NCBI RefSeq assembly: GCF_006345805.1
Contig: NC_043011.1
Location: 63,128,464-63,192,463 of the forward strand
Direction of reading: 5' to 3'
DNA: 64,000 bases
Origin: Octopus sinensis
Taxonomy: Eukaryota
Shown: one piece after another, positions 1,831 through 57,152 of the stretch
Numbering within the stretch: the stretch's first letter is position 1
How the letters are laid out: each line of letters opens with the position of its first letter
The notes under the pieces: generated by a model
Database searches by the model: none
Seen by the model: only the letters and a program-made list of their open reading frames with translations
What the model was told of the DNA's origin: nothing
Made by a program: the position numbers and the translations under genes

Positions 1831-1996
1831 CACCGGTTTAGAATAAGTGACAGCAATTTACTTAACTATGCGTTCTGAATTTGAATTAGTTTCCGTACAA
1901 ACATACTTTAGACCTTCTAAAACGAATCAATTGGTTAAATGGCCCATAGCAATTTAATTATGCATGCCATCCAAATCATTATATATGTCTTCAGAT

Positions 1997-2032
1997 TATA
2001 ATTTACAACGTCAAATACTACAAATGTCATTC
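1997..2032 (+). promoter_or_regulatory. Candidate core promoter (TATA-like box plus Inr) of the peptide gene, repeated at the start of each unit
   Basis: TATAAT at 1997-2002 and TCATTC (Inr-like, A at 2029) 32 nt downstream, ~105 nt before the ATG. Both motifs persist in all six units, but the sequence is AT-rich so chance is possible. Confidence 0.4.
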
Positions 2033-2134
2033 GTCTTTGTAGTTCAAGAACATCTGTTACACCAGAGTCCATCTTACGATTTCAAATAATAATTTAATTG
2101 GTTACAACAACACTAAACGTTTAGTTCAAGAAAA

Positions 2135-54600: not shown

Positions 54601-56001
54601 GTTTATTTATTACTTTAAAAGCAACTTCGATATGTTTAAATTTATTTTGTATCTGCTGTTCAGATCGAGTTTGCAAATGGCGAACTGTTCGTTTTGCAAT
54701 TTCGTTCAGACACGAAGCACCTATGCTCTCTGTTTGGGTAAGGCCATGCCATGTGTTGATAAGAACGTCGACTTCATTATCAGACTTCGAACTTTCTTTC
54801 TGCTCCGTTTATTGTTCCATTTCTACTAAATATCTTTGACGTAAGTTTATATATATATATATATATATATATATATATATATATATATATATATATATAA
54901 CACACGAAATGAAACACACAGACACAAATTTTACACCTTACTACTAAGTATTTTGACGTTTGTCTCCCTCACACGCACAATCACACTTACACACACACAG
55001 GCACTAATGCAGTTATATACCACACTCATACACATACACAAAAAATCACACTCATTAACACAGGCACACACCCGCACATCCCCATACATACAGCATACAT
55101 AGTGTCCCCTACCTTTTTTAATACTTCCTCCTTCTACCCATTTTTAACGTCATTGCTTATAACGGATTATTTAAAAAACACACTCATTATCACTTTGGTC
55201 ACCATGTAGGCAATCATCAAAAACTTTTGTTCATCTTGTGGCTGAAAGAGGCTCCTTTTCTTTCCTGATGAGAAGATGGCATAATACACCCTTTTTTCAT
55301 TCGGAATTAAAATTATGCCCTCTTCGAAACATGTGTCAATAGTAAAGGAATTTTGTTAAAATCTTCGTTCGATTCCATTCTTTCATTTATTTATATATAT
55401 ATATATATATATGACTCCACACATACACAGACACATACACACAGAGACACACACACTCTCACACGCGCACGCTCATAAACACAATCAAATAAAGAGATAC
55501 ACACATGTCAGAAAGTAGCAAAACTATTCCGATATTATTTTGTTTTTCAGTCGTGTGAGAATGTGGGACCAGTGCTTCGTTGGCGTATCCAAATATTGTT
55601 CTTTCGTGTTCCAGACAGTGATGAGAGTGATGTGCATCGGTAAGTTTTATGCGATTTTATATTTCGTAAATCCTTGTCTTTGAAGATATAATCTTTTTGC
55701 CTAACTTCAGAATACTAAATTAAAATATAGCAACCGAGAGTTTGGATCAAACCCTCCTGTATTGGTACACATAACCGCTTAAATATACGCCACAGACACA
55801 TCTCTTACATTACTGTATATTTATCATTTATTGTAGTAACGAAGTTCTCATCTTACTAATAATACACTATGTCACTGCTATGCATTCTATACTTTTCTTA
55901 TGATAGTGAATTATAATCGTCAAACCAAAACAGTTTTAGAATAACACTAAGTAAAATAGGTTGTATAATTTCGATCCCACTTCTTTCTCTTTACAGATTG
56001 A
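45660..56001 (+). CDS. Secreted 6-Cys peptide precursor, copy 6 (83 aa from first ATG): join 45660-45717, 47934-48033, 55551-55639, 55997-56001; exon 3 encodes [30 protein letters not shown]
   Basis: Intact splice sites and frame; same 12-nt start duplication as copy 4; 7.5-kb intron 2; AATAAA 56044-56049. Confidence 0.78.
49301..49560 (-). mobile_element. PLE-type terminal segment ending in a hammerhead, next to (TA)n
   Basis: U6-specific sequence with a hammerhead at its minus-strand 3' end; the PLE assignment is by association only. Confidence 0.5.
49317..49367 (-). ncRNA. Compact type I hammerhead ribozyme
   Basis: AGCUUC-CUGAUGA-UUUCCUUUGAAU-GAAA-CAG-UUCUAGUC-CUG-UA-GAAGCU: 6-bp helix I, 4-bp helix III, intact core, GUA cleavage between 49323 and 49322. 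Confidence 0.8.
50412..54786 (-). mobile_element. Decayed CR1-clade LINE with most of ORF1 (tandem CCCH-like fingers), APE endonuclease and RT
   Basis: EN: [38 protein letters not shown]: [41 protein letters not shown]. Multiple stops and frameshifts. Confidence 0.92.
54787..55390 (+). mobile_element. 3' part of the same PLE remnant as 42775-43410 (shared by U5 and U6)
   Basis: Colinear with the U5 sequence from cttcgaactt to ttcgttcga(c/t)tccattc; its 5' part is replaced by the LINE. Confidence 0.75.
55254..55348 (+). ncRNA. Type I hammerhead-like fold, paralogue of 43268-43362
   Basis: CUGAUGA 55265-71, long helix II, GAAA 55326-29, ACAUGUGUC; helix I weaker (3 mismatches). Confidence 0.45.
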
Positions 56002-57152
56002 AATCATCTATTTTGTACCCACTTCGATGATCGGTTTCCAATCAATAAATAGGAATATAGATTTGACACCGAAAAAATTTGAAAAGGAGAAAAAAGGTTT
56101 ATGTAAATAAATGTATTTATGAGCATCGTATCGTTTGGTTGTTTTTTCGTATTTGTAGATCATTGAACGAAGGATCTATAAGCAAAACCAGATGATAAAC
56201 AAGCTGTACTACACAATAAAAGGTGCCTTTATTTCTGCTCTTCCTACATGCAAGGAGATAGGCATACATCCATAAGGACAGGTGCCACTCGGCCCGTTCC
56301 TGTTTTCGTAATCAATTGTTCGGTGGGGAGAGGAATGGCTGTTGTGGCCGATGAAGGACTACTACTACTACTACTACTACTACTACTACTACTACTACTA
56401 CTACTACTACTACAGCTGCTGTTTCTTCTACTGCTGCTGCTGTTGCTACCATTGTTGTTGATGAGGTTCCGAACTGACAGAATCTATTTGTCCTTCTCTT
56501 TTTCTTCTTCTTCTTCCCCCCCATCTTTAGCTTTTATTATCATTGAATCTAGAAATTCTAGAAAGCAATGTATTAACGGCATTGTTAACACCAATGGCAT
56601 TTAGATGCAATTCTCCAACGATATTTCATTTAAATAATCGTTTTGTCTACGTTGCTGGATATTCAATGCATATTAACAACGTAATATATATAGCAATAGC
56701 GATATAAAACCTAATTTTGTCGGTGGCAACACGAATCCATTTACAATTTCTTCAAAGAAATGATGGTAGTTTCATGTGTAGCTTTTAAATGTATCAGTAT
56801 AAAAAATAAATTTCAATTGAAACAACCTTTTTATAATGTGGCAATATTCCCGCATTGTAACGTTGCAGTTAATGTGGATTAAAATAGATTTCTTTGTCGA
56901 TTCAGTTTTATATATGCACCATAATAATTAGAACATCCAAGAGATACCGATAAATGGTTCACGATACCTGAAACGCACAATATAATTCATAACATCTATT
57001 TTAAATTCTTTGTGTTTGATTATAGTGTTATAATGAAAAACATTGATGTCTCTCGATCCATTTTCAACGATGTACTCTGTCCTTTGTTAATTCTTACATA
57101 TCTTCATGAATAACTGAAAGAAGAACAAGAAACGATCTTACAGTGATACTAT

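Follow-up and report, generated by a model that had tools for sequence, protein, structure and literature searches.

The window analysed here is a stretch of 64,000 nucleotides (nt) of the Octopus sinensis genome (assembly GCF_006345805.1, contig NC_043011.1, forward-strand positions 63,128,464 to 63,192,463), and the subject of this study is a tandem array of six small genes, u1 to u6, which it holds between positions 1979 and 56959. A sequence-only reading of the window had proposed six four-exon units at this locus, and that structure was borne out: the units lie head-to-tail on the + strand where they had been placed, and all six present coding exons of 46, 100, 89 and 5 nt. Every junction was read, which yielded GT at 18/18 donors and AG at 18/18 acceptors. 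The spliced open reading frame (ORF) is 240 nt long in each unit, encoding 79 amino acids (aa) followed by TGA. None of the six copies contains an internal stop, all 36 framework cysteines (Cys) are present, and the product of each unit is a signal peptide plus a 59-aa domain with the spacing C-x7-C-x16-C-x8-C-x7-C-x11-C. When each exon was searched by BLAST together with 30 nt of flank, exactly six copies per exon were found, all on the + strand and in consistent order. Self-comparison of the window shows that 1979-56959 is the exact extent of the tandem repeat, whose unit of ~6.2 kb, including introns and spacers, has 84-96% identity between copies.

The coding sequence (CDS) of u1, for which splice sites and translation were read directly, occupies 2135-2180, 4246-4345, 6286-6374 and 6748-6752 (+), with the ATG at 2135, three GT/AG junctions, the terminal acceptor at 6747/6748, and a product of 79 aa that ends in ...MCID*. 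The five other units are located on the same strand: u2 at 8360-8405, 14592-14691, 17066-17154 and 17528-17532 (79 aa); u3 at 19120-19165, 21375-21474, 24236-24324 and 24696-24700 (79 aa; residue 66 is a seventh Cys); u4 at 26487-26532 (with an alternative in-frame ATG at 26475), 28536-28635, 33432-33520 and 33625-33629; u5 at 35352-35397 (with compensated indels), 37816-37915, 43596-43684 and 44056-44060; and u6 at 45672-45717 (with an alternative in-frame ATG at 45660), 47934-48033, 55551-55639 and 55997-56001. The "5-nt exon" is merely the coding part of a terminal exon.

The ~150 nt ahead of each ATG include elements that are kept between species, among them a TATA-like box ~150 nt before the ATG. 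The corresponding promoter and 5' untranslated region (UTR) block of u1 spans 1979-2134 (+), with its TATA-like TTATATA at ~1982-1990, and is repeated ahead of the other units at ~8204, 18963, 26318, 35198 and 45504. Aligning nine upstream regions from two species shows that the TATA-like box and the 17-nt block AACATCTGTTACACCAG are invariant. This block, found in u1 at ~2055-2071 (i.e., ~65-80 nt 5' of the ATG), is more conserved than the neighbouring sequence, and may be a candidate promoter or 5' UTR control element. At the other end, an AATAAA is located ~43 nt past the stop in every unit but u4 (in u1, at 6795-6800 on the + strand); the first signal of u4 is mutated, and only its second signal is left. 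With a promoter block, ATG, signal peptide, stop and AATAAA to itself, each unit therefore looks like a self-contained gene. The 3' UTR of the last unit and the intergenic tail cover 56002-56959 (+), and the section 56482-56959 matches the spacers at 7723-8203, 18483-18962 and 45025-45503.

The peptides had also been described as unrecognised, and this did not hold in full. Databases contain two entries from O. bimaculoides (XP_052830362.1, and A0A0L8GPT8 as "Secreted protein"), and a fused O. vulgaris model spans the orthologous array. The window's own proteins are absent from a collection of 5.8 billion proteins, and therefore appear to be unannotated in this genome. The first protein search produced one match, O. 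bimaculoides XP_052830362.1 (115 aa, 71% identical). With window-type queries, a word-seeded protein search retrieved only P0001 and P0002, both from O. bimaculoides, and with the family alignment as query it retrieved only six known members. The window proteins present 58-72% identity to the nearest O. bimaculoides members.

The O. bimaculoides locus (L001) has ~80% identity to the window over alignable non-coding DNA, and contains three tandem units, A to C, with the same exon structure, all three of which keep the ORF, the splice sites and the six Cys. Splicing unit A by hand with the four exons reproduces every residue of A0A0L8GPT8 (78 aa), which makes this entry an independent prediction of the four-exon gene. 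XP_052830362.1 (LOC128249859) is a paralogue, and its RefSeq model includes an additional cassette exon, absent from the window, which changes the frame in which the terminal exon is read (L001 13580-13645 and 14387-14434). The cassette exon adjoins GAGTGGCTGTGTGGTAAGTAGCTTGC..., which we take to be similar to a short interspersed nuclear element. Splicing exon 3 straight to exon 4 at this locus would yield a 79-aa window-like product.

A profile search recovers O. vulgaris CAI9735829.1, a 373-aa model with a span of 82 kb (10001-91858 of locus L002, on OX597831.1). This locus contains seven units, of which v1 to v6 are positional orthologues of u1 to u6, and the more diverged v0 is found upstream, beyond the point corresponding to the window's start. 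Six of the seven are intact, the exception being v3, with an extra T in exon 2. The window's flank at 60860-64000 is 97.6-98.4% identical to this O. vulgaris sequence, and the arrays differ in transposable element content. CAI9735829.1 is a fusion over the seven units, in which several copies of exon 1 and of exon 3 are translated out of frame. Just past the array, positions 57021-57110 of the window correspond to the C-terminal 30 residues of the fused model, with a protein-level match of 93%; this segment has no similarity to the family, and is therefore probably a spurious terminal exon of the model.

Taken at face value, CAI9735829.1 implies that the exons are parts of one large multi-domain gene across the array. 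Such a gene would agree with the span of the deposited model over the orthologous array, and genuine multi-domain members do exist elsewhere, such as P0004 with its nine domains. However, the model uses a wrong frame for exon 1 with the 5' UTR as well as for exon 3 (the conserved frame is RVRMW...), each unit presents its own set of signals from promoter block to AATAAA, and the independent model A0A0L8GPT8 consists of a single unit. We regard a single large gene as highly improbable, and CAI9735829.1 should be split into single-unit genes.

In comparison with the positional orthologues in O. vulgaris, the mature CDS differs at 17 of 885 sites (1.9%), versus a non-coding divergence of 3-4.6% in 400-nt intron and flank blocks. 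The mature peptides have 91-100% identity to those of their positional orthologues, and those of the pairs u4/v4 and u5/v5 are identical between the genomes; that of u4 is identical to v4 and also to a segment of CAI9735829.1. Against O. bimaculoides, synonymous divergence (dS) is 0.3-0.7, non-synonymous divergence (dN) is 0.2-0.44, and dN/dS is 0.4-0.8. In a substitution-only neutral simulation, the probability that a copy keeps its ORF and six Cys is 0.004 at d = 0.2, the O. bimaculoides distance. At d = 0.04 it is ~0.3 per copy (~0.3-0.4 for 3-4% divergence), which gives ~1e-3 for six copies if they are independent, and the six are duplicates, so their intactness is not independent. The gene structure, the orthologues and the simulation agree with the earlier proposal of secreted, disulfide-rich small proteins, and the genomic sequence from which these genes are known here supports the view that they are real and under selection.

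The units also differ from one another. Exon 2 is nearly invariant in five of the six copies (98-99%, including flanks), and exon 3 has diverged as much as the introns or more, with changes that are almost all non-synonymous. In u3, the substitution S66C (exon 24236-24324) creates the seventh Cys, which adjoins the fifth framework Cys. The O. vulgaris v3 has this extra Cys too, plus a 1-nt insertion (T5 versus T4) in exon 2 that causes a +1 frameshift (L002 58120-58220), and unit 3 may be turning into a pseudogene. In exon 1 of u5 (35352-35397), compensating indels leave the length unchanged but alter signal-peptide residues 5-14, so that an Arg falls within the hydrophobic core. Exon 1 of v5 is intact, and the mature peptide of v5 is identical to that of u5; the exon in u5 could be either that of a decaying copy or a sequence error. 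A 12-nt duplication, ATGCCCAGGAAA, is found at the start codon of u4 (26475-26498) and of u6 (45660-45683), where it produces an upstream in-frame ATG (MPRKMPRK...); in O. vulgaris, v4 has the duplication and v6 is without it. Intron 3 of u4 presents a deletion of ~270 bp.

Some of these features would be expected if the array were a young segmental duplication of one functional gene, with most copies redundant or decaying and intact only through their youth or through gene conversion. The identity of whole units, introns included, is in keeping with such an origin, as are a dN/dS of ~1 among paralogues, the near-identity of exon 2 and its flanks in five copies, which suggests gene conversion, and the signs of decay, namely the u5 signal peptide, the odd Cys of u3, the lost first poly(A) signal of u4, and the v3 frameshift. 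However, the units have positional orthologues in O. vulgaris, so the duplications predate the split of the two species. The best match between the window and O. vulgaris is the positional counterpart for five of the six units, u4 being the exception. Furthermore, coding divergence between orthologues is about half of the non-coding divergence or less, two pairs of mature peptides are unchanged, and the more diverged O. bimaculoides paralogues keep ORF, splice sites and Cys. We hence find it improbable that most of the array consists of young, redundant copies.

The inflation of the introns is due to two antisense long interspersed nuclear elements (LINEs) and microsatellites. Both LINEs are non-long-terminal-repeat retrotransposons with open frames for an APE endonuclease and an RVT_1 reverse transcriptase, and are located at 10686-13950 (-) in intron 1 of u2 and at 51518-54325 (-) in intron 2 of u6. 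In O. vulgaris, the introns of v2 and v6 differ in size from those of u2 and u6, which suggests that the insertion in u2, at least, is particular to this genome. The window is AT-rich (GC ~0.29-0.49), and scans of it for tRNAs and with Rfam gave no match. Microsatellite or low-complexity tracts are found in introns and flanks at 19271-19726, 24943-25444, 45823-46218 and 60600-61300, and yield spurious ORFs of 120-165 aa (e.g., YLSI repeats and Ser/Leu runs).

To place the six genes among their relatives, a hidden Markov model of the family, made from the two deposited proteins plus exon translations, was searched against 1.84 billion representatives. With hmmsearch, 24 matches were obtained at E <= 1e-3, 8 of them at E <= 1e-10, each match being a cluster at 50% identity. 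The source was looked up for 14 matches, and all 14 come from Octopus (O. bimaculoides, O. vulgaris and O. sinensis). P0013 was rejected as a spurious match, given that it lacks the six-Cys framework. The framework is present in all 21 members checked, and the family alignment comprises 44 distinct domains. Besides P0001 and P0002, there are 20 further proteins with one to nine domain copies each (nine in P0004), in which the Cys spacing is 7, 16, 8, 7 (6-8) and 11 (12), with the exceptions of x17 in P0012 and x10 in one P0006 domain. None of the six window proteins or the 44 aligned domains has lost any of the six Cys, domain residues P17 and R28 are conserved at 90% or more, and the family motif is (Y/F)P-x4-(P/K)D-x2-(Y/F)C-x-R(L/V).

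Members in O. bimaculoides include LOC128249859 (XP_052830362.1), A0A0L8GPT8, LOC128249786/788/836/851/852/887 and LOC128248155; the others include LOC118763774 in O. sinensis and CAI9735826/829/841 in O. vulgaris. In O. bimaculoides they form a supercluster at 49.57-50.29 Mb of CM046618.1 (~0.7 Mb on one chromosome), and in both O. bimaculoides and O. vulgaris the family sits in the same region of the chromosome. None of the members has been named, given its own Pfam entry or assigned a function in print, and literature searches by accessions, peptide words, RGM_N/PF06535, and octopus six-cysteine or salivary terms found nothing on these proteins. The earlier description of the family as lineage-specific and expanded agrees with these results, as it has been found so far only in Octopus and is tandemly arrayed. 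The view of the six-gene cluster as a family of its own needs revision: the array is real, but it is one branch of a larger family of 24 clusters that includes multi-domain and GPI-like members.

A short polar spacer followed by a hydrophobic run is the hallmark of a glycosylphosphatidylinositol (GPI) attachment signal. Nine relatives (P0005, P0006, P0008, P0010, P0011, P0020 and P0022-24) end in such a spacer and then 10-15 hydrophobic residues, as judged by eye, and these tails would be consistent with GPI anchoring. The window proteins have no GPI-signal-like tail and end in ...C-I-D-stop, two residues past the last Cys; other relatives likewise end just past the last Cys. Relatives are mostly tailed or composed of 2-9 tandem domains, whereas the window branch has a single domain. 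In the tailed P0010, introns interrupt the same codons in phases 1, 2 and 1, and exon 4 encodes the tail. These intron positions and phases are common to the window units, O. bimaculoides units A to C and P0010, which indicates that the window branch is the same type of gene with exon 4 truncated to a stop.

Within the 79-aa products, three invariant Tyr-Cys pairs are found at residues 30-31, 47-48 and 64-65, exactly 17 apart, and there are hints in the sequence of a possible internal repeat within the domain. One MAFFT run placed the C-x7-C of exon 3 on the C-x7-C of exon 2, a misalignment that was discarded.

Regarding the fold, AlphaFold2 with 21 family sequences yielded a predicted local distance difference test score (pLDDT) of 84.6 overall and of 89-95 over the domain, with three helices at residues 22-37, 44-58 and 63-76, each of which carries two Cys. 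The first AlphaFold model, built on a shallow alignment, was poor (pLDDT 65). Variation among the paralogues sits mainly in the part encoded by exon 3, which comprises the end of helix 2, the linker and helix 3.

The Cys spacing had been held to fit no known framework (attractin, CHH/ITP, insulin, OBP, defensin and ShK had been named). This stood insofar as the Pfam models of the named frameworks gave no match at E <= 10; it did not stand in that the family appears to have a distant relative, the N-terminal domain of the RGM proteins. A Pfam scan of three window proteins produced no family but RGM_N at E <= 10, with none above threshold, and a search of the window proteins against PDB sequences gave no match. 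Among the 21 family members, 10 match RGM_N (PF06535) at E <= 1, the best at 1.2e-6, and other Pfam families are matched by at most two members each. P0005 reaches 37.9 bits on RGM_N, summed over four repeats, for a cutoff of 24.2, and P0015 has a precomputed PF06535 match. When the 44-domain profile was compared with all PDB sequences, only RGMB and RGMC chains were retrieved (E 0.014-0.1), over C3-x8-C4-x7-C5 and with the alignment pattern D-x-x-(F/Y)C-x-x-L-R-x-Y-x-x-C-x7-C. Aligning the family against the N-terminal domains of RGMA and RGMB with hhalign yielded P = 2.9e-4, the RGMB query sequence having been checked against the PDB.

The RGM N-terminal domain has three disulfides, is part of a GPI-anchored protein, and binds BMP/GDF ligands. 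In RGMA, RGMB and RGMC/hemojuvelin (PDB 4UHY, 4UI0, 4UI1 and 6Z3J), it has three helices and six Cys, the combination predicted for the Octopus domain. Both have the central spacing C-x8-C-x7-C, together with the motif D/E-x-(F/Y)-C-x-x-L/V-R-x-(Y/W)-x-x-C, and the sequence matches between the two groups are weak, yet exclusive and obtained in both directions. A GPI anchor, which RGMs carry, also appears to be present in many Octopus family members. The RGM domain consists of three alpha-helices (PMC7354924), as in the AlphaFold prediction, and helix 3 of the Octopus domain is predicted to be ~10 residues shorter. The RGM C-terminal domain (partial vWD, with GDPH autocleavage) is missing from the window proteins, which give no RGM_C match; because they have neither that domain nor the GPI anchor, the window proteins are not RGMs. 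On the sequence comparisons above, we lean slightly towards homology between the Octopus domain and RGM_N, as distant relatives.

Taken as a whole, we consider it probable that the array comprises six independent four-exon genes, which form an anchorless branch of an Octopus family with an RGM-N-related domain and encode soluble products. Several results weigh against this. The window proteins themselves fall below the Pfam threshold for RGM_N: u1 has no match, and u5 and u6 score 13.7 and 13.3 bits (E ~0.1), for a gathering cutoff of 24.2. The significant Pfam scores come from multi-domain relatives, in which the scores of weak, non-independent repeat matches are summed. The hhalign probability is just 40%. 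With both AlphaFold models, Foldseek against the PDB returned no structure at E < 3.9, and RGM was not among its matches; the models include the signal-peptide helix, however, and small helical bundles are hard for Foldseek. The spacing of RGMB, C-x4-C-x22-C-x8-C-x7-C-x21-C, differs from the x7 and x16 at the start and the x11 at the end of the Octopus domain. RGMB contacts BMP after C5 through Arg100, Leu103 and His106; its RGD/RGN loop and these contacts are missing here, where the window proteins present C-S(L/F)VF(K/Q)TV instead of C-RGNLVYH. At the level of the genes, the u5 signal peptide, the extra Cys of u3 and the v3 frameshift suggest that some copies are decaying, and dN/dS among the six paralogues is ~0.9-1.8, which fits relaxed constraint as well as diversifying selection.

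A different account of the products is that they are venom or salivary toxins, mucus or egg-coat pheromones, or antimicrobial peptides, with the array supplying dosage and variant diversity. A signal peptide, a compact three-disulfide scaffold and lineage-restricted tandem expansion are the typical pattern of such effectors, the changes behind the paralogue dN/dS of ~1-1.8 cluster in one half of the molecule, a membrane anchor is missing, and no family member has been characterised, so nothing contradicts such a role. Positive selection is not claimed, given that paralogue values of 1-1.8 rest on 5-20 substitutions per pair. A possible lead is offered by Aplysia attractin and the Euplotes pheromones, which resemble the predicted window products in size (~40-60 aa), in being helical and secreted with three disulfides, and in forming lineage-restricted sets of paralogues; however, their Cys spacing differs, and they have no sequence or Pfam match to the window proteins. 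More broadly, the family shows no similarity to toxin, pheromone or antimicrobial peptide families in Pfam or the PDB, and the literature searched holds no peptide or accession of it. The net charge of the mature peptides, -1 to +3, is unlike that of a classic cationic antimicrobial peptide. Moreover, the relatives are mostly cell-surface-like (GPI-tailed or multi-domain), which points to cell-surface recognition over venom. The venom or salivary, pheromone or antimicrobial role that the sequence-only reading had put forward found no support, and we judge it unlikely.

The 79-aa precursor would be cleaved after ...GIALT, the predicted site, to release the 59-aa mature protein. Exon 4 stops after one further codon, and therefore the product should be freely secreted. 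Such soluble proteins might act as diffusible binding or decoy proteins, either competing with membrane-anchored paralogues for a shared extracellular partner or binding a cystine-knot ligand as RGM does. The variable part encoded by exon 3 could then be the specificity surface, and it would correspond in position to the ligand-binding face of RGM. The simplest model would have them compete with, or signal to, the system in which their anchored paralogues act; by analogy, a binding or decoy function is conceivable, and we propose it only tentatively. We hold it to be rather doubtful that the full scenario applies, in which the RGM N-terminal module was made free-standing in octopuses and radiated into a supercluster of GPI-anchored, multi-domain and soluble forms, with the six genes as diffusible antagonists or ligands of a cell-surface or BMP/GDF-modulating system.

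Cephalopod genomes contain lineage-specific families that have been associated with an unusual body plan and nervous system, and most of these families have no assigned fold or function. The present analysis turns an unannotated stretch into six defined genes and, in the sister genomes, puts right the fused model CAI9735829.1 and draws attention to the extended model XP_052830362.1. It also defines a domain family by a fixed framework and a shared gene structure, for which an RGM-N-like three-helix, three-disulfide fold is a testable hypothesis. If the link to RGM is false, the family still adds a new scaffold, small, helical and disulfide-bonded, to those of interest for peptide discovery. 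If it is true, it overturns the view of RGM domains as confined to RGMs, and octopuses would seem to possess both soluble and anchored modulators of BMP/GDF or related signalling. An RGM-N-like family that is both stand-alone and expanded would be new; should its RGM-N origin be correct, it would be the first RGM-N family to stand alone, and a signalling innovation specific to cephalopods.

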